DNA from: Auanema rhodensis
Taxonomy: Eukaryota; Animalia; Nematoda
Reading direction: 5' to 3'
Assembly (NCBI GenBank): GCA_964057225.1
Contig: OZ059895.1
Coordinates: 10,044,001-10,108,000 of the forward strand
Length of the DNA stretch: 64,000 nt
The stretch's first letter is position 1, and each line of letters begins with the position of its first letter. The notes under the pieces were generated by a model. The model did no database searches, was not told the origin of the DNA, and saw nothing but the letters and a program-made list of their open reading frames with translations. Made by a program: the position numbers and the translations under genes. Positions 5,622 to 63,737 of the stretch are shown piece by piece.

Positions 5622-5740
5622 GCTTACGACCATACCACGTTGAAAGTACGCCATCCCGTCCGATCTGGCAAGTCAAGCAACGTTGGGCCCGGTTAGTACA
5701 TGGATCGGAGACGGCTTGGGAATCCCGGGTGCCGTATGCT
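5622..5740 (+). rRNA. 5S: 5S rRNA gene, variant T79A+A116T (possibly defective)
   Basis: Full 119-nt 5S followed by oligo-T. The two substitutions disrupt pairs in helix IV and helix I. Confidence 0.85.
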
Positions 5741-7748
5741 TTTCAAATTTTTTTAACGATCATAACACGTTGAAAGTACGCCATGCAGCTGATTTTCAAT
5801 TTTAACTCTTCTATAACAAATTTTTTCAATTTTCAAGCAGTTTTACTTGGATAGCTCAACCAAAGCAGAGCAAAATATCTACAATCTTATTTCTATATTA
5901 CAGTTATAAACCAGTAGTTATTGAACCTTCATCTTAACTTTACTGTTTCTATCTATTTCCTATCGAAACAAACATTGTTTAAACACTATGCAACTGTGAA
6001 ACCTTTTTTATTTTATTGTATTTGGAGCTCATAAGATTTGATATCATCGAGGGATCCTGATGGAACGTGGAAAATTACATAACTAACATGAAATTGGAAA
6101 AAAAACTAAAACGAGGATAAGTATGTTAACCATTGAATATCAGATAATTTCGCTTACGACCATACCACGTTAAAAGTACGCCATACAGCTGAATTTTAAT
6201 TTTATCTCTTCCGTAACAAATGTTTTCAATTTTCAAGCATTTTAACTTAGATAGCTCAACCAAACGAGAGCAAATTATCTTCAATCTTATTTCTATTTTA
6301 CAGTTATGAACCAGTAGGTAATGAACCTTCGTCTTGACTTCACTGTTTTTATATTTTTCCTATCGAAACAAACATTGTTTAAACACTATGCAACTGTGAA
6401 ACCTCTTCAATTTATTGCATTTGGAGCTTATAAGATTTGATATCATCGAGGGATCCTGATGGAACGTGGAAAATTACATAACTAACATGAAATTGGAAAA
6501 AAAACTAAAACGAGGATAAGTATGTTAACCATTGAATATCAGATAATTTCGCTTACGACCATACCACGTTAAAAGTACGCCATACAGCTGAATTTTAATT
6601 TTATCTCTTCCGTAACAAATGTTTTCAATTTTCAAGCATTTTAACTTAGATAGCTCAACCAAAGGAAAGCAAATTATCTTCAATCTTATTTCTATATTAC
6701 AGTTATAAACCAGTAGTTATCAAACCTTCATCTTAACTTTACTGTTTCTATCTATTTCCTATCGAAACAAACATTGTTTAAACACTATGCAACTGTGAAA
6801 CCTCTTCAATTTATTGCATTTGGAGCTTATAAGATTTGATATCATCGAGGGATCCTGATGGAACGTGGAAAATTACATAACTAACATGAAATTGGAAAAA
6901 AAACTAAAACGAGGATAAGTATGTTAACCATTGAATATCAGATAATTTTGCTTACGACCATACCACGTTAAAAGAACGCCATACAGCTGAATTTTAATTT
7001 TATCTCTTCCGTAACAAATGTTTTCAATTTTCAAGCATTTTTACTTAGATAGCTCAACCAAAGGAGAGCAAATTATCTTCAATCTTATTTCTATATTACA
7101 GTTATAAACCAGTAGTTATTAAACCTTCATCTTAACTTTACTGTTTCTATCTATTTCCTATCGAAACAAACATTGTTTAAACACTATGCAACTTTGAAAC
7201 CCTTTTTAATTTATTGTTTTTGGAGCTCATAAGATTTGATATCATCGAGGGATCCTAATGGAACGTGGAAAATTACATAACTAACATAAAATTGGAAAAA
7301 AACTAAAACGAGGATAAGTATGTTGACCATTGAATATCAGATATTTTCGCTTACGACCATACCACGTTAAAAGTACGCAATACAGCTGATTTTTAATTTT
7401 ATCTCTTCCGTAACAAATGTTTTCAATTTTCAAGCATTTTAACTTAGATAGCTCAACCAAACGAGAGCAAATTATCTTCAATCTTATTTCTATATTGCAG
7501 TTATAAACCAGTAGTAAATGAACCTTCGTCTTGACTTCACTGTTTTTATCTTTTTCCTATCGAAACAAACATTGTTTAAACACTATGCAACTGTGAAACC
7601 TTTTTTAATTTATTGTATTTGGAGCTCATAAGATTTGATATCATCGAGGGATCCTGAAGGAACGTGGAAAATTACATAACTAACATAAAATTTGAAAAAA
7701 AACTATAACGAGGATAAGTAGGTAAACCATTGAATATCAGATATTTTC

Positions 7749-7867
7749 GCTTACGACCATACCACGTTGAAAATACGCCATCCCGTCCGATCTGGCAAGT
7801 CAAGCAACGTTGGGCCCGGTTAGTACTTGGATCGGAGACGGCTTGGGAATCCCGGGTGCCGTAAGCT
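7749..7867 (+). rRNA. 5S: 5S rRNA gene (G25A)
   Basis: GCTTACGACC...CCGTAAGCT followed by TTT; helices I-V can be folded by eye. Confidence 0.92.
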
Positions 7868-10800
7868 TTTCAAATTTTTTTAACGATCATAACACGTTGA
7901 AAGTACGCCATACAGCTGATTTTCAATTTTATCTCTTCTGTAACAAATTTTTTCAATTTTTAAGCAGTTTTACTTGGATAGCTCAACCGAAGCAGAGCAA
8001 AATATCTACAATCTTATTTCTATATTACAGTTATAAACCAGTAGTTATTGAACCTTCATCTTAACTTTACTGTTTCTATCTATTTCCTATCGAAACAAAC
8101 ATTGTTTAAACACTATGCAACTTTGAAACCCTTTTTAATTTATTGTTTTTGGAGCTCATAAGATTTGATATCATCGAGGGATCCTGATGGAACGTGGAAA
8201 ATTACATAACTAACATTAAATTGGAAAAAAAACTGAAACGAGGATAAGTATGTTAACCATTGAATATCAGATATTTTCGCTTCCGACCATACCACGTTAA
8301 AAGTACGCCATACAGCTGATTTTTAATTTTATCTCTTCCGTAACAAATGTTTTCAATTTTCAAGCATTTTAACTTAGATAGCTCAACCAAACGAGAGCAA
8401 ATTATCTTCAATCTTATTTCTATATTACAGTTATAAACCAGTAGTTATTGAACCTTCGTCTAGACTTTAGTGTTTTTATCTATTTCCTATCAAAACAAAC
8501 ATTGTTTAAACACTATACAACTATGAAAACTTTTTTAATTTATTGTATTTGGAGCTCATAAGATTTGATATCATCGAGGGGTCCTGATGGAACGTGGAAA
8601 ATTACATAACAAACATAAAATTTGAAAAAAAACTAAAACGAGGATAAGTATGTTAACCATTGAATATCAGATATTTTCGCTTACGACCATACCACGTTAA
8701 AAGTACGCCATACAGCTGATTTTTAATTTTATCTCTTCCGTAACAAATGTTTTCAATTTTCAAGCATTTTAACTTAGATAGCTCAACCAAACGAGAGCAA
8801 ATTATCTTCAATCTTATTTCTATATTGCAGTTATAAATCAGTAGGTAATGAACCTTCGTCTTGACTTCACTGTTTTTATCTTTTCCCTATCGAAACTAAC
8901 ATTGTTTAAACACTATGCAACTGTGAAACCTTTTTTAATTTATTGTATTTGGAGCTTATAAGATTTGATATCATCGAGGGATCCTGATGGAACTTTGAAA
9001 ATTACATAACTAACATGAAATTGGAAAAAAAACTAAAACGAGGATAAGTATGTTAACCATTGAATATCAGATAATTTCGCTTACGATCATACCACGTTAA
9101 AAGTACGCCACACAGCTGATTTTTAATTTCATCTCTTCCGTAACAAATGTTTTCAATTTTCAAGCATTTTTACTTAGATAACTCAACCAAAGGAGAGCAA
9201 ATTATCTTCATTCTTATTTCTATATTACAGTTATAAACCAGTAGTTATCAAACCTTCATCTTAACTTTACTGTTTCTATCTATTTCCTATCGAAACACAC
9301 ATTGTTTAAACACTATGCAACTGTGAAACCTCTTCAATTTATTGCATTTGGAGCTCATAAGATTTGATATCATTGAGGGATCCTGATGGAACGTGGAAAA
9401 TTACATAACTAACATTAAATTGGAAAAAAAACTAAAACGAGGATAAGTATGTTAACCATTGAATATCAGATGATTTCGCTTACGACCATACCACGTTAAA
9501 AGTACGCCATACAGCTGATTTTTAAATTTAGCTCTTCCGTAACAAATGTTTTCAATTTTCAAGCATTTTAACTTAGATAGCTCAACCAAACGAGAGCAAA
9601 TTATCTTCAATCTTATTTCTATATTGCAGTTATGAACCAGTAGGTAATGAACCTTCGTCTTGACTTCACTGTTTTTATATTTTTCCTATCGAAACTAACA
9701 TTGTTTAAACACTATGCAACTGTGAAACCTTTTTTAATTTATTGTATTTGGAGCTCATAAGATTTGATATCATCGAGGGATCTTGATGGAACCTGGAAAA
9801 TTACATAACTAACATGAAATTGGAAAAAAAACTAAAACGAGGATAAGTATGTTAACCATTGAATATCAGATAATTTCGCTTACGATCATACCACGTTAAA
9901 AGTACGCCACACAGCTGATTTTTAATTTTATCTCCGTAACAAATGTTTTCAATTTTCAAGCATTTTAACTTAGATAGCTCAACCAAAGGAAAGCAAATTA
10001 TCTTCAATCTTATTTCTATATTACAGTTATAAACCAGTAGTTATTGAACCTTCGTCTAGACTTTACTGTTTTTATCTATTTCCTATCAAAACAAACATTG
10101 TTTAAACACTATACAACTATGAAACCTTTTTTAATTTATTGTATTTGGAGCTCATAAGATTTGATAACATCGAGGGTTCCTGATGGAACGTGGAAAATTA
10201 CATAACTAACATTAAATTGGAAAAAAAACTAAAACGAGGATAAGTATGTTAACCATTGAATATCAGATATTTTCGCTTACGACCATACCACGTTAAAAGT
10301 ACGCCATACAGCTGATTTTTAATTTTATCTCTTCCGTAACAAATGTTTTCAATTTTCAAGCATTTTAACTTAGATAGCTCAACCAAACGAGAGCATATTA
10401 TCTTCAATCTTATTTCTATATTGCAGTTATAAACCAGTAGGTAATGAACCTTCGTCTTGACTTCACTGTTTTTATCTTTTCCCTATCGAAACTAACATTG
10501 TTTAAACACTATGCAACTGTGAAACCTTTTTTAATTTATTGTATTTGGAGCTCATAAGATTTGATATCATCAAGGGATCCTGATGGAACGTGGAAAATTA
10601 CATAACTAACATGAAATTGGAGAAAAAACTAAAACGAGGATAAGTATGTTAACCATTGAATATTAGATAATTTCGCTTACGACCATACCACGTTAAAAGT
10701 ACGCCACACTGCTGATTTTTAATTTTATCTCCGTAACAAATGTTTTCAATTTTCAAGCATTTTAACTTAGATAGCTCAACCAAAGGAAAGCAAATTATCT

Positions 10801-13800
10801 TCAATCTTATTTCTATATTACAGTTATGAACCAGTAGTTATTGAACGTTCGTCTAGACTTTACTGTTTTTATCTATTTCCTATCAAAACAAACATTGTTT
10901 AAACACTATACAACTATGAAACCTTTTTTAATTTATTGTATTTGGAGCTCATAAGATTTGATAACATCGAGGGTTCCTGATGGAACGTGGAAAATTACAT
11001 AACTAACATTAAATTGGAAAAAAAACTAAAACGAGGATAAGTATGTTAACCATTGAATATCAGATATTTTCGCTTACGACCATACCACGTTAAAAGTACG
11101 CCATACAGCTGATTTTTAATTTTATCTCTTCCGTAACAAATGTTTTCAATTTTCAAGCATTTTAACTTAGATAGCTCAACCAAACGAGAGCAAATTATCT
11201 TCAATCTTATTTCTATATTGCAGTTATAAACCAGTAGGTAATGAACCTTCGTCTTGACTTCACTGTTTTTATCTTTTCCCTATCGAAACTAACATTGTTT
11301 AAACACTATGCAACTGTGAAACCTTTTTTAATTTATTGTATTTGGAGCTCATAAGATTTGATATCATCAAGGGATCCTGATGGAACGTGGAAAATTACAT
11401 AACTAACATGAAATTGGAGAAAAAACTAAAACGAGGATAAGTATGTTAACCATTGAATATTAGATAATTTCGCTTACGACCATACCACGTTAAAAGTACG
11501 CCACACTGCTGATTTTTAATTTTATCTCCGTAACAAATGTTTTCAATTTTCAAGCATTTTAACTTAGATAGCTCAACCAAAGGAAAGCAAATTATCTTCA
11601 ATCTTATTTCTATATTACAGTTATAAACCAGTAGTTATTGAACCTTCGTCTAGACTTTACTGTTTTTATCTATTTCCTATCAAAACAAACATTGTTTAAA
11701 CACTATACAACTATGAAACCTTTTTTAATTTATTGTATTTGGAGCTCATAAGATTTGATAACATCGAGGGTTCCTGATGGAACGTGGAAAATTACATAAC
11801 TAACATTAAATTGGAAAAAAAACTAAAACGAGGATAAGTATGTTAACCATTGAATATCAGATATTTTCGCTTACGACCATACCACGTTAAAAGTACGCCA
11901 TACAGCTGATTTTTAATTTTATCTCTTCCGTAACAAATGTTTTCAATTTTCAAGCATTTTAACTTAGATAGCTCAACCAAACGAGAGCAAATTATCTTCA
12001 ATCTTATTTCTACATTGCAGTTATAAACCAGTAGGTAATGAACCTTCGTCTTGACTTCACTGTTTTTATCTTTTCCCTATCGAAACTAACATTGTTTAAA
12101 CACTATGCAACTGTGAAACCTTTTTTAATTTATTGTATTTGGAGCTCATAAGATTTGATATCATCAAGGGATCCTGATGGAACGTGGAAAATTACATAAC
12201 TAACATGAAATTGGAGAAAAAACTAAAACGAGGATAAGTATGTTAACCATTGAATATTAGATAATTTCGCTTACGACCATACCACGTTAAAAGTACGCCA
12301 CACTGCTGATTTTTAATTTTATCTCCGTAACAAATGTTTTCAATTTTCAAGCATTTTAACTTAGATAGCTCAACCAAAGGAAAGCAAATTATCTTCAATC
12401 TTATTTCTATATTACAGTTATAAACCAGTAGTTATTGAACCTTCGTCTAGACTTTACTGTTTTTATCTATTTCCTATCAAAACAAACATTGTTTAAACAC
12501 TATACAACTATGAAACCTTTTTTAATTTATCGTATTTGGAGCTCATAAGATTTGATATCATCGAGGGTTCCAGATGGAACGTAGAAAATTACATAACTAA
12601 CATGAAATTGGAAAAAAAACAATAACGAGGATAAGTATGTAAATCATTGAATATCAGATATTTCCGCTTACGACCATACCACGTTGAAAATACGCCATAC
12701 AGCTGATTTTTAAATTTATCTCTTCCGTAACAAATGTTTTCAATTTTCAAGCATTTTAACTTAGATAGCTCAACCAAACGAGAGCAAATTATCTTCAATC
12801 TTATTTCTATATTGCAGTTATGAACCAGTAGGTAATGAACCTTCGTCTTGACTTCACTGTTTTTATATTTTTCCTATCGAAACTAACATTGTTTAAACAC
12901 TATGCAACTGTGAAACCTTTTTTAATTTATTGTATTTGGAGCTCATAAGATTTGATATCATCGAGGGATCCTGATGGAACCTGGAAAATTACATAACTAA
13001 CATGAAATTGGAAAAAAAACTGAAACGAGGATAAGTATGTTAACCATTGAATATCAGATAATTTTGCTTACGACCATACCACGTTAAAAGTACGCCACAC
13101 AGCTGATTTTTAATTTTATCTCCGTAACAAATGTTTTCAATTTTCAAGCATTTTAACTTAGATAGCTCAACCAAAGGAAAGCAAATTATCTTCAATCTTA
13201 TTTCTATATTACAGTTATAAACCAGTAGTTATTGAACCTTCGTCTAGACTTTACTGTTTTTATCTATTTCCTATCGAAACAAACATTGTTTAAACACTAT
13301 GCAACTGTGAAACCTTTTTTAATTTATTGTATTTGGAGCTCATAAGATTTGATATCATCGAGGGATCCTGATGGAACGTGGAAAATTACATAACTAACAT
13401 GAAATTGGAGAAAAAACTAAAACGAGGATAAGTATGTTAACCATTGAATATTAGATAATTTCGCTTACGACCATACCACGTTAAAAGTACGCCACACTGC
13501 TGATTTTTAATTGTATCTCCGTAACAAATGTTTTCAATTTTCAAGCATTTTAACTTAGATAGCTCAACCAAAGGAAAGCAAATTATCTTCAATCTTATTT
13601 CTATATTACAGTTATAAACCAGTAGTTATTGAACCTTCGTCTAGACTTTACTGTTTTTATCTATTTCCTATCAAAACAAACATTGTTTAAACACTATACA
13701 ACTATGAAACCTTTTTTAATTTATTGTATTTGGAGCTCATAAGATTTGATAACATCGAGGGTTCCTGATGGAACGTGGAAAATTACATAACTAACATTAA

Positions 13801-16800
13801 ATTGGAAAAAAAACTAAAACGAGGATAAGTATGTTAACCATTGAATATCAGATATTTTCGCTTACGACCATACCACGTTAAAAGTACGCCATACAGCTGA
13901 TTTTTAATTTTATCTCTTCCGTAACAAATGTTTTCAATTTTCAAGCATTTTAACTTAGATAGCTCAACCAAACGAGAGCAAATTATCTTCAATCTTATTT
14001 CTATATTACAGTTATAAACCAGTAGTTATTGAACCTTCGTCTAGACTTTACTGTTTTTATCTATTTCCTATCGAAACAAACATTGTTTAAACACTATGCA
14101 ACTGTGAAACCTTTTTTAATTTATTGTATTTGGAGCTCATAAGATTTGATATCATCGAGGGATCCTGATGGAACGTGGAAAATTACATAACTAACATGAA
14201 ATTGGAGAAAAAACTAAAACGAGGATAAGTATGTTAACCATTGAATATTAGATAATTTCGCTTACGACCATACCACGTTAAAAGTACGCCACACTGCTGA
14301 TTTTTAATTGTATCTCCGTAACAAATGTTTTCAATTTTCAAGCATTTTAACTTAGATAGCTCAACCAAAGGAAAGCAAATTATCTTCAATCTTATTTCTA
14401 TATTACAGTTATAAACCAGTAGTTATTGAACCTTCGTCTAGACTTTACTGTTTTTATCTATTTCCTATCAAAACAAACATTGTTTAAACACTATACAACT
14501 ATGAAACCTTTTTTAATTTATTGTATTTGGAGCTCATAAGATTTGATAACATCGAGGGTTCCTGATGGAACGTGGAAAATTACATAACTAACATTAAATT
14601 GGAAAAAAAACTAAAACGAGGATAAGTATGTTAACCATTGAATATCAGATATTTTCGCTTACGACCATACCACGTTAAAAGTACGCCATACAGCTGATTT
14701 TTAATTTTATCTCTTCCGTAACAAATGTTTTCAATTTTCAAGCATTTTAACTTAGATAGCTCAACCAAACGAGAGCAAATTATCTTCAATCTTATTTTTA
14801 TATTACAGTTATAAACCAGTAGTTATTGAACCTTCGTCTAGACTTTACTGTTTTTATCTATTTCCTATCAAAACAAACATTGTTTAAACACTATACAACT
14901 ATGAAACCTTTTTTAATTTATTGTATTTGGAGCTCATAAGATTTGATAACATCGAGGGTTCCTGATGGAACGTGGAAAATTACATAACTAACATTAAATT
15001 GGAAAAAAAACTAAAACGAGGATAAGTATGTTAACCATTGAATATCAGATATTTTCGCTTACGACCATACCACGTTAAAAGTACGCCATACAGCTGATTT
15101 TTAATTTTATCTCTTCCGTAACAAATGTTTTCAATTTTCAAGCATTTTAACTTAGATAGCTCAACCAAACGAGAGCAAATTATCTTCAATCTTATTTTTA
15201 TATTACAGTTATAAACCAGTAGTTATTGAACCTTCGTCTAGACTTTACTGTTTTTATCTATTTCCTATCAAAACAAACATTGTTTAAACACTATACAACT
15301 ATGAAACCTTTTTTAATTTATTGTATTTGGAGCTCATAAGATTTGATAACATCGAGGGTTCCTGATGGAACGTGGAAAATTACATAACTAACATTAAATT
15401 GGAAAAAAAACTAAAACGAGGATAAGTATGTTAACCATTGAATATCAGATATTTTCGCTTACGACCATACCACGTTAAAAGTACGCCATACAGCTGATTT
15501 TTAATTTTATCTCTTCCGTAACAAATGTTTTCAATTTTCAAGCATTTTAACTTAGATAGCTCAACCAAACGAGAGCAAATTATCTTCAATCTTATTTCTA
15601 CATTGCAGTTATAAACCAGTAGGTAATGAACCTTCGTCTTGACTTCACTGTTTTTATCTTTTCCCTATCGAAACTAACATTGTTTAAACACTATGCAACT
15701 GTGAAACCTTTTTTAATTTATTGTATTTGGAGCTCATAAGATTTGATATCATCAAGGGATCCTGATGGAACGTGGAAAATTACATAACTAACATGAAATT
15801 GGAGAAAAAACTAAAACGAGGATAAGTATGTTAACCATTGAATATTAGATAATTTCGCTTACGACCATACCACGTTAAAAGTACGCCACACTGCTGATTT
15901 TTAATTTTATCTCCGTAACAAATGTTTTCAATTTTCAAGCATTTTAACTTAGATAGCTCAACCAAAGGTAAGCAAATTATCTTCAATCTTATTTCTATAT
16001 TACAGTTATAAACCAGTAGTTATTGAACCTTCGTCTAGACTTTACTGTTTTTATCTATTTCCTATCAAAACAAACATTGTTTAAACACTATACAACTATG
16101 AAACCTTTTTTAATTTATCGTATTTGGAGCTCATAAGATTTGATATCATCGAGGGTTCCAGATGGAACGTAGAAAATTACATAACTAACATGAAATTGGA
16201 AAAAAAACAATAACGAGGATAAGTATGTAAATCATTGAATATCAGATATTTCCGCTTACGACCATACCACGTTGAAAATACGCCATACAGCTGATTTTTA
16301 AATTTATCTCTTCCGTAACAAATGTTTTCAATTTTCAAGCATTTTAACTTAGATAGCTCAACCAAACGAGAGCAAATTATCTTCAATCTTATTTCTATAT
16401 TGCAGTTATGAACCAGTAGGTAATGAACCTTCGTCTTGACTTCACTGTTTTTATATTTTTCCTATCGAAACTAACATTGTTTAAACACTATGCAACTGTG
16501 AAACCTTTTTTAATTTATTGTATTTGGAGCTCATAAGATTTGATATCATCGAGGGATCCTGATGGAACCTGGAAAATTACATAACTAACATGAAATTGGA
16601 AAAAAAACTGAAACGAGGATAAGTATGTTAACCATTGAATATCAGATAATTTTGCTTACGACCATACCACGTTAAAAGTACGCCACACAGCTGATTTTTA
16701 ATTTTATCTCCGTAACAAATGTTTTCAATTTTCAAGCATTTTAACTTAGATAGCTCAACCAAAGGAAAGCAAATTATCTTCAATCTTATTTCTATATTAC

Positions 16801-19800: not shown

Positions 19801-19838
19801 AGGATAAGTAGGTAAACCATTGAATATCAGATATTTTC

Positions 19839-19957
19839 GCTTACGACCATACCACGTTGAAAGTACGCCATCCCGTCCGATCTGGCAAGTCAAGCAACGT
19901 TGGGCCCGGTTAGTACATGGATCGGAGACGGCTTGGGAATCCCGGGTGCCGTATGCT
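19839..19957 (+). rRNA. 5S: 5S rRNA gene, variant T79A+A116T (possibly defective)
   Basis: Same variant as the copy at 5622. Confidence 0.85.
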
Positions 19958-46663: not shown

Positions 46664-46782
46664 GCTTACGACCATACCACGTTGAAAGTACGCCATCCCG
46701 TCCGATCTGGCAAGTCAAGCAACGTTGGGCCCGGTTAGTACTTGGATCGGAGACGGCTTGGGAATCCCGGGTGCCGTAAGCT
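46664..46782 (+). rRNA. 5S: 5S rRNA gene (consensus)
   Basis: Full-length 5S plus terminator. Confidence 0.95.
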
Positions 46783-48789: not shown

Positions 48790-48908
48790 GTTTACGACCA
48801 TACCACGTTGAAAGTACGCCATCCCGTCCGATCTGGCAAGTCAAGCAACGTTGGGCCCGGTTAGTACTTGGATCGGAGACGGCTTGGGAATCCCGGGTGC
48901 CGTAAGCA
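48790..48908 (+). rRNA. 5S: 5S rRNA gene (C2T, T119A; first terminator reduced to T3)
   Basis: Ends CCGTAAGCATTTCAAATTTTTTT. Confidence 0.9.
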
Positions 48909-50119: not shown

Positions 50120-50238
50120 GCTTACGACCATACCACGTTGAAAGTACGCCATCCCGTCCGATCTGGCAAGTCAAGCAACGTTGGGCCCGGTTAGTACTTG
50201 GATCGGAGACGGCTTGGGAATCCCGGGTGCCGTAAGCT
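50120..50238 (+). rRNA. 5S: 5S rRNA gene (consensus)
   Basis: Full-length 5S plus terminator. Confidence 0.95.
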
Positions 50239-51447
50239 TTTCAAATTTTTTTAACGATCATAACACGTTGAAAGTACGCCATACAGCTGATTTTCAATTT
50301 TATCTCTTCTGTAACAAATTTTTTCAATTTTTAAGCAGTTTTACTTGGATAGCTCAACCGAAGCAGAGCAAAATATCTACAATCTTATTTCTATATTACA
50401 GTTATAAACCAGTAGTTATTGAACCTTCATCTTAACTTTACTGTTTCTATCTATTTCCTATCGAAACAAACATTGTTTAAACACTATGCAACTGTGAAAC
50501 CTCTTCAATTTATTGCATTTGGAGCTCATAAGATTTGATATCATCGAGGGATCCTGATGGAACGTGGAAAATTACATAACTAACATGAAATTGGAAAAAA
50601 AACTAAAACGAGGATAAGTATGTTAACCATTGAATATCAGATATTTTCGCTTACGACCATACTACGTTAAACGTACGCCATACAGCTGATTTTTAATTTT
50701 ATCTCTTCCGTAACAAATGTTTTCAATTTTCAAGCCTTTTTACTTAGATAGCTCAACCAAAGGAGAGCAAATTATCTTCATTCTTATTTCTATATTACAG
50801 TTATAAACCAGTAGTTATTGAACCTTCATCTTAACTTTACTGTTTCTATCTATTTCCTATCGAAACAAACATTGTTTAAACACTATGCAACTTTGAAACC
50901 CTTTTTAATTTATTGTTTTTGGAGCTCATAAGATTTGATATCATCGAGGGATCCTGATGGAACGTGGAAAATTACATAACTAACATTAAATTGGAAAAAA
51001 AACTGAAACGAGGATAAGTATGTTAACCATTGAATATCAGATATTTTCGCTTACGACCATACCACGTTAAAAGTACGCCATACAGCTGATTTTTAATTTT
51101 ATCTCTTCCGTAACAAATGTTTTCAATTTTCAAGCATTTTAACTTAGATAGCTCAACCAAACGAGAGCAAATTATCTTCAATCTTATTTCTATATTGCAG
51201 TTATGAACCAGTAGGTAATGAACCTTCGTCTTGACTTCACTGTTTTTATCTTTTTCCTATCGAAACTAACATTGTTTAAACACTATGCAACTGTGAAACC
51301 TTTTTTAATTTATTGTATTTGGAGCTCATAAGATTTGATATCATCGAGGGATCCTGATGGAACGTGGAAAATTACATAACTAACATGAGATTGCAAAAAA
51401 ACTAAAACGAGGATAAGTATGTTAACTATTGAATATCAGATATTTTC

Positions 51448-51566
51448 GCTTATGACCATACCACGTTGAAAGTACGCCATCCCGTCCGATCTGGCAAGTC
51501 AAGCAACGTTGGGCCCGGTTAGTACTTGGATCGGAGACGGCTTGGGAATCCCGGGTGCCGTAAGCT
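51448..51566 (+). rRNA. 5S: 5S rRNA gene (C6T)
   Basis: Full-length; satellite-type upstream flank. Confidence 0.93.
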
Positions 51567-53972
51567 TTTCAAATTTTTTTAACGATCATAACACGTTGAA
51601 AGTACGCCATACAGCTGATTTTCAATTTTATCTCTTCTGTAACAAATTTTTTCAATTTTTAAGCAGTTTTACTTGGATAGCTCAACCGAAGCAGAGCAAA
51701 ATATCTACAATCTTATTTCTATATTACAGTTATAAACCAGTAGTTATTGAACCTTCATCTTAACTTTACTGTTTCTATCTATTTCCTATCGAAACAAACA
51801 TTGTTTAAACACTATGCAACTGTGAAACCTCTTCAATTTATTGCATTTGGAGCTCATAAGATTTGATATCATCGAGGGATCCTGATGGAACGTGGAAAAT
51901 TACATAACTAACATGAAATTGGAAAAAAAACTAAAACGAGGATAAGTATGTTAACCATTGAATATCAGATATTTTCGCTTACGACCATACTACGTTAAAC
52001 GTACGCCATACAGCTGATTTTTAATTTTATCTCTTCCGTAACAAATGTTTTCAATTTTCAAGCATTTTTACTTAGATAGCTCAACCAAACGAGAGCAAAT
52101 TATCTTCAATCTTATTTCTATATTGCAGTTATGAACCAGTAGGTAATGAACCTTCGTCTTGACTTCACTGTTTTTATCTTTTTCCTATCGAAACTAACAT
52201 TGTTTAAACACTATGCAACTGTGAAACCTTTTTTAATTTATTGTATTTGGAGCTCATAAGATTTGATATCATCGAGGGATCCTGATGGAACGTGGAAAAT
52301 TACATAACTAACATGAGATTGCAAAAAAACTAAAACGAGGATAAGTATGTTAACTATTGAATGTCAGATATTTTCGCTTACGACCATACCACGTTAAAAG
52401 TACGCCACACAGCTGATTTTTAATTTTATCTCCGTAACAAATGTTTTCAATTTTCAAGCATTTTAACTTAGATAGCTCAACCAAAGGAAAGCAAATTATC
52501 TTCAATCTTATTTCTATATTACAGTTATAAACCAGTAGTTATTGAACCTTCGTCTAGACTTTAGTGTTTTTATCTATTTCCTATCAAAACAAACATTGTT
52601 TAAACACTATACAACTATGAAAACTTTTTTAATTTATTGTATTTGGAGCTCATAAGATTTGATATCATCGAGGGATCCTGATGGAACGTGGAAAATTACA
52701 TAACTAACATAAAATTTGAAAAAAAACTAAAACGAGGATAAGTAGGTAAACCATTGAATATCAGATATTTTCGCTTACGACCATACCACGTTGAAAGTAC
52801 GCCATACAGCTGATTTTTAATTTTATCTCTTCCGTAACAAATGTTTTCAATTTTCAAGCATTTTTACTTAGATAGCTCAACCAAAGGAGAGCAAATTATC
52901 TTCAATCTTATTTCTATATTACAGTTATAAACCAGTAGTTATTAAACCTTCATCTTAACTTTACTGTTTCTATCTATTTCCTATCGAAACAAACATTGTT
53001 TAAACACTATGCAACTTTGAAACCCTTTTTAATTTATTGTTTTTGGAGCTCATAAGATTTGATATCATTGAGGGATCCTGTCGGAACGTGGAAAATTACA
53101 TAACTAACATGAAATTGGAAAAAAAACTAAAACGAGGATAAGTATGTTAACCATTGAATATCAGATATTTTCGCTTACGACCATACTACGTTAAACGTAC
53201 GCCATACAGCTGATTTTTAATTTTATCTCTTCCGTAACAAATGTTTTCAATTTTCAAGCATTTTTACTTAGATAGCTCAACCAAACGAGAGCAAATTATC
53301 TTCAATCTTATTTCTATATTGCAGTTATGAACCAGTAGGTAATGAACCTTCGTCTTGACTTCACTGTTTTTATCTTTTTCCTATCGAAACTAACATTGTT
53401 TAAACACTATGCAACTGTGAAACCTTTTTTAATTTATTGTATTTGGAGCTCATAAGATTTGATATTATCGAGGGATCCTGAAGGAACGTGGAAAATTACA
53501 TAACTAACATAAAATTTGAAAAAAAACTATAACGAGGATAAGTATGTTAACCATTGACAATCAGATATTTTCGCTTACGACCATACTACGTTAAAAGTAC
53601 GCCATACAGCTGATTTTTAATTTTATCTCTTCCGTAACAAATGTTTTCAATTTTCAAGTATTTTAACTTAGATAGCTCAACCAAACGAGAGCAAATTATC
53701 TTCAATCTTATTTCTATATTGCAGTTATAAATCAGTAGGTAATGAACCTTCGTCTTGACTTCACTGTTTTTATCTTTTTCCTATCGAAACAAACATTGTT
53801 TAAACACTATGCAACTGTGAAACCTTTTTTGATTTATTGTATTTCGAGCTCATAAGATTTGATATTATCGAGGGATCCTGAAGGAACGTGGAAAATTACA
53901 TAACTAACATGAAATTTGAAAAAAAACTATAACGAGGATAAGTAGGTAAACCATTGAATATCAGATATTTTC

Positions 53973-54091
53973 GTTTACGACCATACCACGTTGAAAGTAC
54001 GCCATCCCGTCCGATCTGGCAAGTCAAGCAACGTTGGGCCCGGTTAGTACTTGGATCGGAGACGGCTTGGGAATCCCGGGTGCCGTAAGCT
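53973..54091 (+). rRNA. 5S: 5S rRNA gene (C2T)
   Basis: Full-length 5S plus terminator. Confidence 0.93.
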
Positions 54092-54901
54092 TTTCAAATT
54101 TTTTTAACGATCATAACACGTTGAAAGTACGCCATACAGCTGAATTTCAATTTTATCTCTTCTGTAACAAATTTTTTCAATTTTTAAGCAGTTTTACTTG
54201 GATAGCTCAACCGAAGCAGAGCAAAATATCTACAATCTTATTTCTATATTACAGTTATAAACCAGTAGTTATTGAACCTTCATCTTAACTTTACTGTTTC
54301 TATCTATTTCCTATCAAAACAAACATTGTTTAAACACTATGCAACTTTGAAACCCTTTTTAATTTATTGTTTTTGGAGCTCATAAGATTTGATATCATCG
54401 AGGGATCCTAATGGAACGTGGAAAATTACATAACTAACATTAAATTGGAAAAAAACTAAAACGAGGATAAGTATGTTAACCATTGAATATCAGATATTTT
54501 CGCTTACGACCATACCACGTTAAAAGTACGCAATACAGCTGATTTTTAATTTTATCTCTTCCGTAACAAATGTTTTCAATTTTCAAGCATTTTAACTTAG
54601 ATAGCTCAACCAAACGAGAGCAAATTATCTTCAATCTTATTTCTATATTGCAGTTATAAACCAGTAGTAAATGAACCTTCGTCTTGACTTCACTGTTTTT
54701 ATCTTTTTCCTATCGAAACAAACATTGTTTAAACACTATGCAACTGTGAAACCTTTTTTAATTTATTGTATTTGGAGCTCATAAGATTTGATATCATCGA
54801 GGGATCCTGAAGGAACGTGGAAAATTACATAACTAACATAAAATTTGAAAAAAAACTATAACGAGGATAAGTAGGTAAACCATTGAATATCAGATATTTT
54901 C

Positions 54902-55020
54902 GCTTACGACCATACCACGTTGAAAGTACGCCATCCCGTCCGATCTGGCAAGTCAAGCAACGTTGGGCCCGGTTAGTACTTGGATCGGAGACGGCTTGGG
55001 AATCCCGGGTGCCGTAAGCT
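54902..55020 (+). rRNA. 5S: 5S rRNA gene (consensus)
   Basis: Full-length 5S plus terminator. Confidence 0.95.
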
Positions 55021-57027
55021 TTTCAAATTTTTTTAACGATCATAACACGTTGAAAGTACGCCATACAGCTGATTTTCAATTTTATCTCTTCTGTAACAAA
55101 TTTTTTCAATTTTTAAGCAGTCTTACTTAGATAGCTCAACCAAACGAGAGCAAATTATCTTCAATCTTATTTCTATATTGCAGTTATGAACCAGTAGGTA
55201 ATGAACCTTCGTCTTGACTTCACTGTTTTTATCTTTTTCCTATCGAAACTAACATTGTTTAAACACTATGCAACTGTGAAACCTTTTTTAATTTATTGTA
55301 TTTGGAGCTCATAAGATTTGATATCATCGAGGGATCCTGATGGAACGTGGAAAATTACATAACTAACATGAGATTGCAAAAAATCTAAAACGAGGATAAG
55401 TATGTTAACTATTGAATGTCAGATAATTTCGCTTACGACCATACCACGTTAAAAGTACGCCACACAGCTGATTTTTAATTTTATCTCCGTAACAAATGTT
55501 TTCAATTTTCAAGCATTTTAACTTAGATAGCTCAACCAAAGGAAAGCAAATTATCTTCAATCTTGTTTCTATATTACAGTTATAAACCAGTAGTTATTGA
55601 ACCTTCGTCTAGACTTTAGTGTTTTTATCTATTTCCTATCAAAACAAACATTGTTTAAACACTATACAACTATGAAAACTTTTTTAATTTATTGTATTTG
55701 GAGCTCATAAGATTTGATATCATCGAGGGATCCTGATGGAACGTGGAAAATTACATAACTAACATAAAATTTGAAAAAAAACTAAAACGAGGATAAGTAG
55801 GTAAACCATTGAATATCAGATATTTTCGCTTACGACCATACCACGTTGAAAGTACGCCATACAGCTGATTTTTAATTTTATCTCTTCCGTAACAAATGTT
55901 TTCAATTTTCAAGCATTTTTACTTAGATAGCTCAACCAAAGGAGAGCAAATTATCTTCAATCTTATTTCTATATTACAGTTATAAACCAGTAGTTATTAA
56001 ACCTTCATCTTAACTTTACTGTTTCTATCTATTTCCTATCGAAACAAACATTGTTCAAACACTATGCAACTTTGAAACCCTTTTTAATTTATTGTTTTTG
56101 GAGCTCATAAGATTTGATATCATCGAGGGATCCTGTCGGAACGTGGAAAATTACATAACTAACATTAAATTGGAAAAAAAACTAAAACGAGGATAAGTAT
56201 GTTAACCATTGACAATCAGATATTTTCGCTTACGACCATACCACGTCAAAAGTACGCCATACAGCTGATTTTTAATTTTATCTCTTCCGTAACAAATGTT
56301 TTCAATTTTCAAGTATTTTAACTTAGATAGCTCAACCAAACGAGAGCAAATTATCTTCAATCTTATTTCTATATTGCAGTTATAAACCAGTAGGTAATGA
56401 ACCTTCGTCTTGACTTCACTGTTTTTATCTTTTTCCTATCGAAACAAACATTGTTTAAACACTATGCAACTGTGAAACCTTTTTTAATTTATTGTATTTG
56501 GAGCTCATAAGATTTGATATTATCGAGGGATCCTGAAGGAACGTGGAAAATTACATAACTAACATAAAATTTGAAAAAAAACTATAACGAGGATGAGTAT
56601 GTTAACCATTGACAATCAGATATTTTCGCTTACGACCATACTACGTTAAAAGTACGCCATACAGCTGATTTTTAATTTTATCTCTTCCGTAACAAATGTT
56701 TTCAATTTTCAAGTATTTTAACTTAGATAGCTCAACCAAACGAGAGCAAATTATCTTCAATCTTATTTCTATATTGCAGTTATAAATCAGTAGGTAATGA
56801 ACCTTCGTCTTGACTTCACTGTTTTTATCTTTTTCCTATCGAAACAAACATTGTTTAAACACTATGCAACTGTGAAACCTTTTTTGATTTATTGTATTTG
56901 GAGCTCATAAGATTTGATATTATCGAGGGATCCTGAAGGAACGTGGAAAATTACATAACTAACATAAAATTTGAAAAAAAACTATAACGAGGATAAGTAG
57001 GTAAACCATTGAATATCAGATATTTTC

Positions 57028-57146
57028 GTTTACGACCATACCACGTTGAAAGTACGCCATCCCGTCCGATCTGGCAAGTCAAGCAACGTTGGGCCCGGTT
57101 AGTACTTGGATCGGAGACGGCTTGGGAATCCCGGGTGCCGTAAGCA
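57028..57146 (+). rRNA. 5S: 5S rRNA gene (C2T, T119A)
   Basis: Same variant as the 48790 copy, 8238 bp away. Confidence 0.9.
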
Positions 57147-58357
57147 TTTCAAATTTTTTTAACGATCATAACACGTTGAAAGTACGCCATACAGCTGAAT
57201 TTCAATTTTATCTCTTCTGTAACAAATTTTTTCAATTTTTAAGCAGTTTTACTTGGATAGCTCAACCGAAGCAGAGCAAAATATCTACAATCTTATTTCT
57301 ATATTACAGTTATAAACCAGTAGTTATTGAACCTTCATCTTAACTTTACTGTTTCTATCTATTTCCTATCGAAACAAACATTGTTTAAACACTATGCAAC
57401 TGTGAAACCTCTTCAATTTATTGCATTTGGAGCTCATAAGATTTGATATCATCGAGGGATCCTGATGGAACGTGGAAAATTACATAACTAACATGAAATT
57501 GGAAAAAAAACTAAAACGAGGATAAGTATGTTAACCATTGAATATCAGATATTTTCGCTTACTTCCATACTACGTTAAACGTACGCCATACAGCTGATTT
57601 TTAATTTTATCTCTTCCGTAACAAATGTTTTCAATTTTCAAGCATTTTTACTTAGATAGCTCAACCAAAGGAGAGCAAATTATCTTCATTCTTATTTCTA
57701 TATTACAGTTATAAACCAGTAGTTATTGAACCTTCATCTTAACTTTACTGTTTCTATCTATTTCCTATCGAAACAAACATTGTTTAAACACTATGCAACT
57801 TTGAAACCCTTTTTAATTTATTGTTTTTGGAGCTCATAAGATTTGATATCATCGAGGGATCCTGATGGAACGTGGAAAATTACATAACTAACATTAAATT
57901 GGAAAAAAAACTGAAACAAGGATAAGTATGTTAACCATTGAATATCAGATATTTTCGCTTACGACCATACCTTGTTAAAAGTACGCCATACAGCTGATTT
58001 TTAATTTTATCTCTTCCGTAACAAATGTTTTCAATTTTCAAGCATTTTAACTTAGATAGCTCAACCAAACGAGAGCAAATTATCTTCAATCTTATTTCTA
58101 TATTGCAGTTATGAACCAGTAGGTAATGAACCTTCGTCTTGACTTCACTGTTTTTATCTTTTTCCTATCGAAACTAACATTGTTTAAACACTATGCAACT
58201 GTGAAACCTTTTTTAATTTATTGTATTTGGAGCTCATAAGATTTGATATCATCGAGGGATCCTGATGGAACGTGGAAAATTACATAACTAACATAAAATT
58301 TGAAAAAAAAACTATAACGAGGATAAGTAGGTAAACCATTGAATATCAGATATTTTC

Positions 58358-58476
58358 GCTTACGACCATACCACGTTGAAAGTACGCCATCCCGTCCGAT
58401 CTGGCAAGTCAAGCAACGTTGGGCCCGGTTAGTACTTGGATCGGAGACGGCTTGGGAATCCCGGGTGCCGTAAGCT
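58358..58476 (+). rRNA. 5S: 5S rRNA gene (consensus)
   Basis: Full-length 5S plus terminator. Confidence 0.95.
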
Positions 58477-59685
58477 TTTCAAATTTTTTTAACGATCATA
58501 ACACGTTGAAAGTACGCCATACAGCTGATTTTCAATTTTATCTCTTCTGTAACAAATTTTTTCAATTTTTAAGCAGTTTTACTTGGATAGCTCAACCGAA
58601 GCAGAGCAAAATATCTACAATCTTATTTCTATATTACAGTTATAAACCAGTAGTTATTGAACCTTCATCTTAACTTTACTGTTTCTATCTATTTCCTATC
58701 GAAACAAACATTGTTTAAACACTATGCAACTGTGAAACCTCTTCAATTTATTGCATTTGGAGCTCATAAGATTTGATATCATCGAGGGATCCTGATGGAA
58801 CGTGGAAAATTACATAACTAACATGAAATTGGAAAAAAAACTAAAACGAGGATAAGTATGTTAACCATTGAATATCAGATATTTTCGCTTACGACCATAC
58901 TACGTTAAACGTACGCCATACAGCTGATTTTTAATTTTATCTCTTCCGTAACAAATGTTTTCAATTTTCAAGCCTTTTTACTTAGATAGCTCAACCAAAG
59001 GAGAGCAAATTATCTTCATTCTTATTTCTATATTACAGTTATAAACCAGTAGTTATTGAACCTTCATCTTAACTTTACTGTTTCTATCTATTTCCTATCG
59101 AAACAAACATTGTTTAAACACTATGCAACTTTGAAACCCTTTTTAATTTATTGTTTTTGGAGCTCATAAGATTTGATATCATCGAGGGATCCTGATGGAA
59201 CGTGGAAAATTACATAACTAACATTAAATTGGAAAAAAAACTGAAACGAGGATAAGTATGTTAACCATTGAATATCAGATATTTTCGCTTACGACCATAC
59301 CACGTTAAAAGTACGCCATACAGCTGATTTTTAATTTTATCTCTTCCGTAACAAATGTTTTCAATTTTCAAGCATTTTAACTTAGATAGCTCAACCAAAC
59401 GAGAGCAAATTATCTTCAATCTTATTTCTATATTGCAGTTATGAACCAGTAGGTAATGAACCTTCGTCTTGACTTCACTGTTTTTATCTTTTTCCTATCG
59501 AAACTAACATTGTTTAAACACTATGCAACTGTGAAACCTTTTTTAATTTATTGTATTTGGAGCTCATAAGATTTGATATCATCGAGGGATCCTGATGGAA
59601 CGTGGAAAATTACATAACTAACATGAGATTGCAAAAAAACTAAAACGAGGATAAGTATGTTAACTATTGAATATCAGATATTTTC

Positions 59686-59804
59686 GCTTATGACCATACC
59701 ACGTTGAAAGTACGCCATCCCGTCCGATCTGGCAAGTCAAGCAACGTTGGGCCCGGTTAGTACTTGGATCGGAGACGGCTTGGGAATCCCGGGTGCCGTA
59801 AGCT
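59686..59804 (+). rRNA. 5S: 5S rRNA gene (C6T)
   Basis: Full-length; satellite-type upstream flank. Confidence 0.93.
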
Positions 59805-61410
59805 TTTCAAATTTTTTTAACGATCATAACACGTTGAAAGTACGCCATACAGCTGATTTTCAATTTTATCTCTTCTGTAACAAATTTTTTCAATTTTTAA
59901 GCAGTTTTACTTGGATAGCTCAACCGAAGCAGAGCAAAATATCTACAATCTTATTTCTATATTACAGTTATAAACCAGTAGTTATTGAACCTTCATCTTA
60001 ACTTTACTGTTTCTATCTATTTCCTATCGAAACAAACATTGTTTAAACACTATGCAACTGTGAAACCTCTTCAATTTATTGCATTTGGAGCTCATAAGAT
60101 TTGATATCATCGAGGGATCCTGATGGAACGTGGAAAATTACATAACTAACATGAAATTGGAAAAAAAACTAAAACGAGGATAAGTATGTTAACCATTGAA
60201 TATCAGATATTTTCGCTTACGACCATACTACGTTAAACGTACGCCATACAGCTGATTTTTAATTTTATCTCTTCCGTAACAAATGTTTTCAATTTTCAAG
60301 CATTTTTACTTAGATAGCTCAACCAAACGAGAGCAAATTATCTTCAATCTTATTTCTATATTGCAGTTATGAACCAGTAGGTAATGAACCTTCGTCTTGA
60401 CTTCACTGTTTTTATCTTTTTCCTATCGAAACTAACATTGTTTAAACACTATGCAACTGTGAAACCTTTTTTAATTTATTGTATTTGGAGCTCATAAGAT
60501 TTGATATCATCGAGGGATCCTGATGGAACGTGGAAAATTACATAACTAACATGAGATTGCAAAAAAACTAAAACGAGGATAAGTATGTTAACTATTGAAT
60601 GTCAGATATTTTCGCTTACGACCATACCACGTTAAAAGTACGCCACACAGCTGATTTTTAATTTTATCTCCGTAACAAATGTTTTCAATTTTCAAGCATT
60701 TTAACTTAGATAGCTCAACCAAAGGAAAGCAAATTATCTTCAATCTTATTTCTATATTACAGTTATAAACCAGTAGTTATTGAACCTTCGTCTAGACTTT
60801 AGTGTTTTTATCTATTTCCTATCAAAACAAACATTGTTTAAACACTATACAACTATGAAAACTTTTTTAATTTATTGTATTTGGAGCTCATAAGATTTGA
60901 TATCATCGAGGGATCCTGATGGAACGTGGAAAATTACATAACTAACATAAAATTTGAAAAAAAACTAAAACGAGGATAAGTAGGTAAACCATTGAATATC
61001 AGATATTTTCGCTTACGACCATACCACGTTGAAAGTACGCCATACAGCTGATTTTTAATTTTATCTCTTCCGTAACAAATGTTTTCAATTTTCAAGCATT
61101 TTTACTTAGATAGCTCAACCAAAGGAGAGCAAATTATCTTCAATCTTATTTCTATATTACAGTTATAAACCAGTAGTTATTAAACCTTCATCTTAACTTT
61201 ACTGTTTCTATCTATTTCCTATCGAAACAAACATTGTTTAAACACTATGCAACTTTGAAACCCTTTTTAATTTATTGTTTTTGGAGCTCATAAGATTTGA
61301 TATCATTGAGGGATCCTGTCGGAACGTGGAAAATTACATAACTAACATTAAATTGGAAAAAAAACTAAAACGAGGATAAGTATGTTAACCATTGACAATC
61401 AGATATTTTC

Positions 61411-61529
61411 GCTTACGACCATACCACGTTGAAAGTAAGCCATCCCGTCCGATCTGGCAAGTCAAGCAACGTTGGGCCCGGTTAGTACTTGGATCGGAGA
61501 CGGCTTGGGAATCCCGGGTGCCGTAAGCT
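61411..61529 (+). rRNA. 5S: 5S rRNA gene (C28A)
   Basis: Full-length; C28A breaks the C28-G51 pair of helix III; satellite-type upstream flank. Confidence 0.88.
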
Positions 61530-62739
61530 TTTCAAATTTTTTTAACGATCATAACACGTTGAAAGTACGCCATACAGCTGATTTTCAATTTTATCTCTTC
61601 TGTAACAAATTTTTTCAACTTTTAAGCAGTTTTACTTGGATAGCTCAACCGAAGCAGAGCAAAATATCTACAATCTAATTTCTATATTACAGTTATAAAC
61701 CAGTAGTTATTGAACCTTCTTCTTAACTTTACTGTTTCTATCTATTTCCTATCGAAACAAACATTGTTTAAACACTATGCAACTGTGAAACCTCTTCAAT
61801 TTATTGCATTTGGAGCTCATAAGATTTGATATCATCGAGGGATCCTGATGGAACGTGGAAAATTACATAACTAACATGAAATTGGAAAAAAAACTAAAAC
61901 GAGGATAAGTATGTTAACCATTGAATATCAGATATTTTCGCTTACGACCATACTACGTTAAACGTACGCCATACAGCTGATTTTTAATTTTATCTCTTCC
62001 GTAACAAATGTTTTCAATTTTCAAGCATTTTTACTTAGATAGCTCAACCAAAGGAGAGCAAATTATCTTCATTCTTATTTCTATATTACAGTTATAAACC
62101 AGTAGTTATTGAACCTTCATCTTAACTTTACTGTTTCTATCTATTTCCTATCGAAACAAACATTGTTTAAACACTATGCAACTTTGAAACCCTTTTTAAT
62201 TTATTGTTTTTGGAGCTCATAAGATTTGATATCATCGAGGGATCCTGATGGAACGTGGAAAATTACATAACTAACATCAAATTGGAAAAAAAACTGAAAC
62301 GAGGATAAGTATGTTAACCATTGAATATCAGATATTTTCGCTTACGACCATACCACGTTAAAAGTACGCCATACAGCTGATTTTTAATTTTATCTCTTCC
62401 GTAACAAATGTTTTCAATTTTCAAGCATTTTAACTTAGATAGCTCAACCAAACGAGAGCAAATTATCTTCAATCTTATTTCTATATTGCAGTTATGAACC
62501 AGTAGGTAATGAACCTTCGTCTTGACTTCACTGTTTTTATCTTTTTCCTATCGAAACTAACATTGTTTAAACACTATGCAACTGTGAAACCTTTTTTAAT
62601 TTATTGTATTTGGAGCTCATAAGATTTGATATCATCGAGGGATCCTGATGGAACGTGGAAAATTACATAACTAACATAAAATTTGAAAAAAAACTATAAC
62701 GAGGATAAGTAGGTAAACCATTGAATATCAGATATTTTC

Positions 62740-62858
62740 GCTTACGACCATACCACGTTGAAAGTACGCCATCCCGTCCGATCTGGCAAGTCAAGCAACG
62801 TTGGGCCCGGTTAGTACTTGGATCGGAGACGGCTTGGGAATCCCGGGTGCCGTAAGCT
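62740..62858 (+). rRNA. 5S: 5S rRNA gene (consensus)
   Basis: GCTTACGACCATACCACGTTGAAAGTACGCCATCCCGTCCGATCTGGCAAGTCAAGCAACGTTGGGCCCGGTTAGTACTTGGATCGGAGACGGCTTGGGAATCCCGGGTGCCGTAAGCT; contains the conserved eukaryotic CCGATCT and GTTAGTACTTGG motifs. Confidence 0.96.
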
Positions 62859-62872
62859 TTTCAAATTTTTTT
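62858..62872 (+). terminator. Pol III oligo-T terminator pair (T4 + T7); representative copy, present after the full 5S genes
   Basis: TTTTCAAATTTTTTT directly after the 5S 3' end. Pol III terminates at runs of 4 or more T. Confidence 0.85.
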
Positions 62873-62873
62873 A

Positions 62874-62902
62874 ACGATCATAACACGTTGAAAGTACGCC
62901 AT
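62874..62902 (+). repeat. Downstream degenerate duplicate of 5S nt 5-33 (representative; follows every full gene)
   Basis: ACGATCATAACACGTTGAAAGTACGCCAT versus gene ACGACCATACCACGTTGAAAGTACGCCAT: 27/29 identical, offset 130 bp. Confidence 0.95.
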
Positions 62903-63669
62903 ACAGCTGATTTTCAATTTTATCTCTTCTGTAACAAATTTTTTCAATTTTTAAGCAGTTTTACTTGGATAGCTCAACCGAAGCAGAGCAAAATATCTAC
63001 AATCTTATTTCTATATTACAGTTATAAACCAGTAGTTATTGAACCTTCATCTTAACTTTACTGTTTCTATCTATTTCCTATCGAAACAAACATTGTTTAA
63101 ACACTATGCAACTTTGAAACCCTTTTTAATTTATTGTTTTTGGAGCTCATAAGATTTGATATCATCGAGGGATCCTGATGGAACGTGGAAAATTACATAA
63201 CTAACATCAAATTGGAAAAAAAACTGAAACGAGGATAAGTATGTTAACCATTGAATATCAGATATTTTCGCTTACGACCATACCACGTTAAAAGTACGCC
63301 ATACAGCTGATTTTTAATGTTATCTCTTCCGTAACAAATGTTTTCAATTTTCAAGCATTTTAACTTAGATAGCTCAACCAAACGAGAGCAAATTATCTTC
63401 AATCTTATTTCTATATTGCAGTTATGAACCAGTAGGTAATGAACCTTCGTCTTGACTTCACTGTTTTTATCTTTTTCCTATCGAAACTAACATTGTTTAA
63501 ACACTATGCAACTGTGAAACCTTTTTTAATTTATTGTATTTGGAGCTCATAAGATTTGATATCATCGAGGGATCCTGATGGAACGTGGAAAATTACATAA
63601 CTAACATAAAATTTGAAAAAAAACTATAACGAGGATAAGTAGGTAAACCATTGAATATCAGATATTTTC

Positions 63670-63737
63670 GCTTACGACCATACCACGTTGAAAGTACGCC
63701 ATCCCGTCCGATCTGGCAAGTCAAGCAACGTTGGGCC
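63670..63737 (+). pseudogene. 5S: 5S rRNA gene interrupted after nt 68
   Basis: Matches consensus to ...CAACGTTGGGCC, then switches abruptly to unrelated sequence. Confidence 0.93.

Follow-up and report, generated by a model that had tools for sequence, protein, structure and literature searches.

The stretch of DNA considered here, a window of 64,000 nucleotides (nt) in the nematode Auanema rhodensis (C3:10044001-10108000, read in + orientation, within a 181-Mb assembly), is filled by a tandem array in which 5S rRNA genes are interleaved with shorter, gene-less units of the same repeat. A scan with the Rfam model RF00001 (gathering score 38) finds 29 intact 5S genes, all on the + strand and scoring 100.2-108.2 bits over model positions 1-120, and one partial match at 63670-63748. 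Cutting the window at every 5S start gives 150 units, 29 with a gene and 121 without, i.e. a ratio of 1:4.2. The original prediction, made from the sequence of this window, had distinguished gene-bearing units of 530 bp from gene-less ones of 400 bp, which is true: 20 gene units measure 529 bp, eight 530 bp and one 517 bp, while the gene-less units measure 400 bp (68 units), 397 bp (32), 399 bp (19) or 401 bp (2). Between the genes Tandem Repeats Finder (TRF) reports a period of 397-400 bp with an identity of 91-96%. The GC content stays at 30-33% across the whole window, and among the open reading frames in the 64 kb only one exceeds 90 amino acids (95 aa), which is taken as a chance occurrence. 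The limits first given to the array, 5622 and 63737, were both wrong. Positions 1-5621 hold 14 further gene-less units, with the satellite reaching about 0.4 Mb farther left, and the right-hand limit is the site of a 10.2-kb long terminal repeat (LTR) element past which the 5S gene continues. The array and the two kinds of unit can be laid out as follows, with bases numbered by their position in the 5S gene.

1..5621, + strand: gene-less satellite of 14 units, mostly 397 and 400 bp in alternation (TRF period 397, 14.2 copies; unit list)
5622..63669, + strand: mixed array of 29 gene units (529/530 bp, one of 517 bp) among 107 gene-less units (397-401 bp) (RF00001, unit list)
62740..62858, + strand: example of an intact 5S gene (RF00001, 107.5 bits, model positions 1-120), with the first repeat copy, nt 5-33, at 62744-62772
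62859..62873, + strand: T-rich linker, which together with T119 reads TTTTCAAATTTTTTTA, a run resembling a Pol III terminator (sequence reading)
62874..62902, + strand: downstream direct repeat of 5S nt 5-33, 27/29 identical (T9, A14), 130 bp past the first copy and followed by ACAGCTG
63270..63302, + strand: example of a gene-less head, nt 1-33 with C9, C14 and A21, joined to ACAGCTG at 63303

The parental unit thus laid out, 529 or 530 bp long, has an intact 5S gene, followed by the terminator (a run of T), by the 29-bp copy of nt 5-33 and by a spacer of 367 bp. Directly 3' of every gene stands TTTTCAAATTTTTTT, invariant in 29/29 units and of the kind at which Pol III terminates. The second copy of nt 5-33, whose presence 130 bp downstream had been noticed beforehand, occurs at exactly this offset in each of the 29 gene units; it is identical to the gene at 27 of 29 positions in 24 units and at 26 of 29 in the other five, differs by T9 and A14, and matches perfectly over its final 19 bp. 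Linker and downstream copy together show no variation at all across the 29 units (nucleotide diversity, pi, = 0). The 121 gene-less monomers contain 5S nt 1-33 and the full 367-bp spacer of the gene unit, and nt 34-119 are absent. In agreement with the earlier description, the stub is followed by ACAGCTG, the very sequence that follows the downstream copy, and the gene's own bases are mostly kept (C9 in 117/121 heads, C14 in 121/121). RF00001 gives no match in a 4-kb gene-less stretch, even at E<=10. A21, present in 103 of the 121 local gene-less heads and in neither repeat of the gene unit, is a later change.

The sequence upholds the proposal that the 400-bp unit corresponds to a 530-bp unit from which the 130 bp between the 29-bp direct repeats have been lost. 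The loss matches the 130-bp offset between the copies, and one hybrid repeat is kept, with the gene's C9 on one side and the flank of the downstream copy on the other; the consensus head of the main satellite is the exact hybrid predicted, i.e. gene nt 1-33 with G21 and then ACAGCTG. The observation of the two unit types and of the downstream copy is confirmed and far beyond chance. The lost part comprises nt 34-119 and the terminator. The type 1 Pol III promoter consists of the A box, the intermediate element and the C box, which lie inside nt 34-119, and the internal control region is therefore wholly contained in the lost segment, as had been stated. The crossover had been placed in nt 15-33, an interval that widens to nt 10-33 because the downstream copies of other arrays carry C14, A14 being private to the zone of the window.

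In the reading that we consider probable, the window is the edge of a 5S-derived satellite in which the 130-bp deletion was rare, the resulting lineages were amplified and blocks of units were copied recently. Joining of the two 29-bp copies removes exactly 130 bp, made up of nt 34-119 (and with them the internal promoter), the terminator and one copy of the repeat, and leaves a unit of 399 or 400 bp with a 33-nt 5S stub; this much the sequence itself shows. Such joining may have been a non-reciprocal, homology-guided deletion, for example by single-strand annealing after a break or by replication slippage, and may have taken place only a few times on C3. Each gene-less lineage would then have spread through unequal exchange and block amplification, the largest one giving rise to a satellite of about 0.4 Mb whose end falls in the window. 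The interleaving seen in the window would go back to multi-unit blocks of 3-8 kb that contain both old unit types and were copied very recently.

Pattern searches across the whole genome (up to 3 mismatches allowed, all counts being lower bounds) bear on this route. They return at least 2136 gene heads, at least 1717 downstream copies and at least 1942 gene-less junctions, so that the ratio of gene to gene-less units genome-wide is nearer 1:1 than 1:4. Reciprocal double-gene junctions, that is, 659-bp units in which the second gene starts with the 5' end of the downstream copy, number zero genome-wide, though they could have been lost; gene units that lack the downstream copy are likewise absent from the arrays in the genome-wide pattern search. 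We infer a non-reciprocal route for the deletion. An interval of 130 bp is stiff for a looped-out crossover, a difficulty that neither the annealing of resected ends nor slippage has to face.

The wider chromosome shows both unit types in separate as well as mixed arrays. 5S-related arrays occupy much of C3 between 9.64 and 13.47 Mb, in both orientations, and about 0.3 Mb of this region of about 3.8 Mb was examined in samples. Only gene-less units of 396-402 bp occur in the samples at 9.7, 9.8, 9.9, 9.95, 10.0, 10.15, 11.2 and 11.6 Mb, and the first junction match lies at 9.6396 Mb; the gene-less unit thus forms long arrays of its own, as befits a 5S-derived satellite. The block at 1..5621 is the right-hand portion of the satellite of about 0.4 Mb that starts near C3:9.64 Mb. 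Traces of gene units begin at about 10.03 Mb (a downstream-copy match and a single gene-body match in the 10.02-Mb sample, and also C3:10,029,843). Within the window the share of genes climbs rightward, from 2 of 49 units up to position 19838 through 7 of 33 in 19839-33909 to 20 of 68 from 33910 onwards. The window is the right-hand boundary zone of the satellite block. Gene units predominate at 11.88-13.47 Mb. Pure 530-bp arrays with the downstream duplicate, which the original prediction had hoped to find in related genomes, are present in this same genome, for instance at C3 11.994-12.003 Mb, where 529-bp units, all with the downstream copy, follow one another in a row of at least 17.

The original prediction had gone on to suggest that the unit carries its own deletion substrate and that ancestor and promoter-less derivative therefore occur together in one array at roughly 1:4; on this view gene units go on deleting their own cassette in place and the ratio is a steady one. 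One half of this idea stands, since the deletion substrate is indeed carried by every gene unit (29/29), and a gene-less family at 13 Mb that is nearly identical to the gene unit on both flanks implies that the event is still possible. The other half, the local ratio, fails for the window, where the two types form separate lineages in copied blocks, and ongoing self-deletion is here largely refuted and in our judgement very unlikely. Four spacer sites in the first 60 bp past the junction (alignment columns 176, 191, 201 and 219) are fixed, their gene-unit state occurring in 29/29 gene units and 0/121 gene-less units, and several more sites are nearly so. In the first 100 bp of the spacer the two types diverge by 11.6%, against 2.4-4% within each type, and by about 6% farther along. 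Every gene-less unit of the window zone that can be compared without gaps differs from every gene unit by at least 6 mismatches per 100 bp next to the junction. It follows from these fixed differences on the junction side that none of the gene-less units of the window was recently derived from a gene unit of the window. A crossover in nt 5-8 was considered for the four T9 heads and rejected, since all four have satellite-type spacers and A21; they are point changes on satellite backgrounds. The pattern of genes in the window recurs, rather, in higher-order blocks that are 99.9-100% identical, compared with about 93% between neighbouring monomers.

33910..42679, + strand: two copies of a 4385-bp higher-order block, each with three gene and seven gene-less units, differing by one base
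42680..48789, + strand: two copies of a 3055-bp higher-order block, each with two gene and five gene-less units; the second recurs without a mismatch as a third copy at 53973-57027
48790..61410, + strand: 8238-bp repeat at 48790-57027; from 57028 onwards its first 4383 bases are repeated, with 4 mismatches

Recurrences of the 3055-bp block differ by 0-4 mismatches. The 1:4 ratio of the window is owed to which blocks of 3.1-8.2 kb happened to be copied, and among arrays the ratio ranges from 0 to more than 5:1. Identity of 100% over 3 kb is also hard to assemble, and the number of block copies could be wrong for that reason; that the assembler made the interleaving or the block copy number is nonetheless barely credible. 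Mixed arrays with differing variants and patterns are found in more than 10 separately sampled places, units 7-10% apart, too different to be confused, are intermingled in the left part of the window, and the contig spans 24 Mb.

How many deletions lie behind the gene-less units is a question of lineages. In a tree of 468 spacers the units cluster by array, not by type: one clade from 12-13 Mb (113 units, support 0.998) unites 79 gene units with 34 gene-less ones, and three spacer haplotypes within it occur in both states. To read the 13 or more state changes on this tree as so many independent deletions would overstate their number: of the gene-less heads in the 12-13 Mb arrays 26 of 32 have a private T at -6, which is found in 0 of 71 gene heads, and the tree mostly reflects spacer exchange. 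Most gene-less heads of the 12-13 Mb arrays would accordingly trace back to one head lineage, put on local spacers by exchange and block copying. Near 13.08-13.10 Mb the same arrays include another lineage, present as four block copies. Its 150-bp flanks on each side are identical to those of a gene unit, from which it differs by 3 mismatches in 765 bp, and it marks a recent event. No pair of gene and gene-less units agrees to within 2 mismatches over both entire flanking spacers, and a comparison of 150-bp flanks gave the one family. The satellites at 11.2 and 11.6 Mb have G7A and C10T in common in their stubs. The gene-less lineages recognised are the 9.6-10.15 Mb group, which includes the window, that of 11.2/11.6 Mb and the two in the 12-13 Mb arrays. 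Judging by such markers, the head lineages seem to be few, about three to five, with a rare founding event and amplification as the dominant process.

The same data can be read in terms of a single deletion, after which the presence or absence of the cassette was moved about by crossovers or gene conversion ending inside the 29-bp repeat. We regard this as possible but rather unlikely. It draws on the 26 of 32 heads whose private T at -6 is combined with spacers identical to those of local gene units, which demonstrates that heads and spacers recombine, and on the single junction found in gene-less units throughout the genome. The identical junction, however, is equally expected from repeated homology-guided deletion, and the markers linked to the heads differ (A or G past the junction, G7A/C10T, T at -6, gene-type flanks). 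Moreover, each transfer needs an exchange to end within about 30 bp, a requirement no less demanding than that of a new deletion. A further alternative, which we judge decidedly improbable, reverses the order of events: the stub unit would have arisen first, by a non-homologous deletion in a 5S unit that lacked the duplicate, and the gene unit with its downstream copy later, by a join of an intact gene's terminator to nt 5 of a stub or by restoration of the cassette, and would then have swept through the arrays. Both histories require at least one non-homologous join; MAFFT aligns the downstream copy with the stub, its counterpart in position, and divergence is equally deep among gene-less and among gene lineages. 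The reversed order nevertheless requires a complete sweep over more than 1 Mb, given that every gene array sampled, long pure runs included, has the downstream copy and that the genome holds no relic gene unit devoid of it, and the recent gene-less units would still need a deletion.

Several points weigh against the reading of rare deletion followed by amplification. This reading does not explain where the downstream copy came from, and no homology between the spacer and the 5S gene was detected beyond the 29 bp; a wider spacer-5S relationship was considered and dropped, the best local score being 18 against 14.2 +/- 1.9 for shuffled sequences, with 6% of the shuffles scoring as well. All comparisons lie within one genome, so that the first event is not polarised by an outgroup, and scans of metagenome contigs for the junction and for the gene gave no match. 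On the reverse strand 322 downstream copies stand against 1118 genes. The pattern counts are lower bounds, the sampling covers about 0.3 of about 3.8 Mb, and the order of units is that of the assembly. Finally, exchange or conversion by way of the 29-bp repeat could mimic fresh deletions, and the number of independent deletions may lie anywhere from 1 to about 5.

As to function, the genes and the stubs present different pictures. Of 33 genes sampled in and beside the window nine are equal to the genome consensus and the others are 1-2 bases off, and among the 29 gene units of the window pi amounts to 0.013 in the gene and 0.04 in the spacer. The embedded 5S genes look intact, and their transcription and use in ribosomes are predicted from sequence. 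In the pure satellites no constraint is seen on the stub or the upstream region, the stub diverging by 8-10% and the spacer by 5-14% among lineages; the gene-less units are most likely inert repeat DNA. The spacers differ in what they place upstream of the two kinds of head: those ahead of genes mostly have GTAGGTAAACC (26/30) and those ahead of stubs mostly GTATGTTAACC (e.g. 62710-62720 versus 63240-63250). The TAAA that the gene spacers of the window have at about -26 to -23 also occurs in the 12-13 Mb gene arrays; it could be a TATA-like element retained upstream of the genes, or could reflect plain linkage.

Further variation was noted in the arrays. Alternation of 397-bp and 400-bp units makes most of the gene-less array at 1-5621 and at 9877-19838 a dimer of 797 bp, the 397-bp form being short of 3 bp between ATC and TCC. 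Blocks read in + orientation at 9.64-10.14, 11.6 and 11.88-12.9 Mb, in - orientation at 10.15, 11.2 and 13.04-13.22 Mb, and in + orientation again at 13.46 Mb, so that this super-locus of 5S-related blocks contains large inversions. At C3 about 12.094-12.097 Mb there are gene units of only 345 bp, with a full gene and a shortened spacer; together with pattern spacings of 547 and 1077 bp at C3 12.436 Mb they indicate further variants of unit length. Away from the arrays, a solitary and intact-looking 5S gene lies at C8:10319125-10319243 (107 bits), with unrelated flanks and no downstream 29-bp copy. Two more features of the window remain to be listed.

28344-28860, + strand: gene unit of 517 bp with a 12-bp spacer deletion (alignment columns 356-367)
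63670..63737, + strand: 5S gene interrupted after nt 68 by the LTR element (RF00001 partial match and sequence reading)

The LTR element begins at 63738 and is about 10.2 kb long. Its ends are TG...CA, its LTRs measure about 335 bp, and 5 bp of target sequence (GGGCC) are duplicated at the insertion. The remainder of the interrupted 5S gene and the array resume beyond it, outside the window.

Usually only the end product of a 5S-derived satellite is seen. Here one chromosome keeps the parental unit, the repeat pair that was joined, lineages of different ages, pure arrays of each unit type and a boundary zone between them. This makes the locus a test and teaching case for the decay of a gene array to a satellite, for the rarity of founding deletions relative to amplification and for the control of local gene density by block copying. 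It also raises the question of whether body cells retain or discard the 5S-derived blocks along with the intact genes enclosed in them. A bolder idea, to which we give very little credence, is that the downstream copy is a built-in and repeatedly used switch from a Pol III gene to a gene-less unit, by which satellites are systematically seeded from Pol III arrays, and that the stubs might give rise to short transcripts that mark the repeat for silencing or for elimination from body cells. The upstream region and the start site are still there in the gene-less units, as is a T-run close by, and if the idea were true, short transcripts of the 5S head would be possible.

5S-derived satellites are already known, and the Auanema case is a nematode instance of that kind. 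PcP190 in frogs, 5SHindIII in Hoplias malabaricus and PLsatB in Plantago lagopus are, as far as the accounts drawn on here describe them, satellites that contain gene and spacer parts of 5S DNA and were amplified outside the functional arrays (PMC5437419, PMC3342222, PMC11202950). According to these accounts PcP190 keeps a region of about 120 bp that resembles the whole transcribed part, whereas the Auanema stub is confined to nt 1-33. Set beside the three satellites as described there, Auanema differs in that the parental unit, the derived unit and the joining repeat are all present on one chromosome. PcP190, 5SHindIII and PLsatB belong to vertebrates and plants, and we assume that the Auanema satellite originated independently of them, with any likeness owed solely to the 5S gene.

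Pikes provide a case of amplified 5S arrays with higher-order structure, in which spacer diversity is 0.051 and gene diversity 0.0145 (Symonova et al. 2017, PMC5437419). The diversity of the spacer is thus about three times that of the gene, as in Auanema (0.04 vs 0.013). The pike arrays, however, are made of gene-bearing units without significant pseudogenisation, while those of Auanema hold gene-less units. A partial copy of the gene within the unit is also reported elsewhere: oocyte-type 5S DNA of Xenopus laevis, in work attributed to Jacq, Miller and Brownlee in 1977, reportedly contains a copy of the 5' part of the gene shortly after the gene itself. That copy is said to extend over about 101 nt, in comparison with the 29 nt from nt 5 in Auanema, and we know of no gene-less satellite seeded by the Xenopus laevis 5S pseudogene.

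The nearest match is found in the beetle Tribolium freemani. Its 5S clusters consist of genes interspersed with tandem arrays of spacer-only units and interrupted by retrotransposons (Volaric et al. 2024, PMC11202950), and the longer of its spacer variants is composed of the shorter one plus part of the 5S gene (PMC11202950). As in Auanema, 5S genes alternate with arrays of spacer units and with retrotransposons. The two systems differ in sequence and in unit sizes, and no direct repeat within the Tribolium freemani unit has been described as a substrate for deletion. In Auanema, unlike in the beetle, the gene-less unit also forms arrays of hundreds of kb away from genes.

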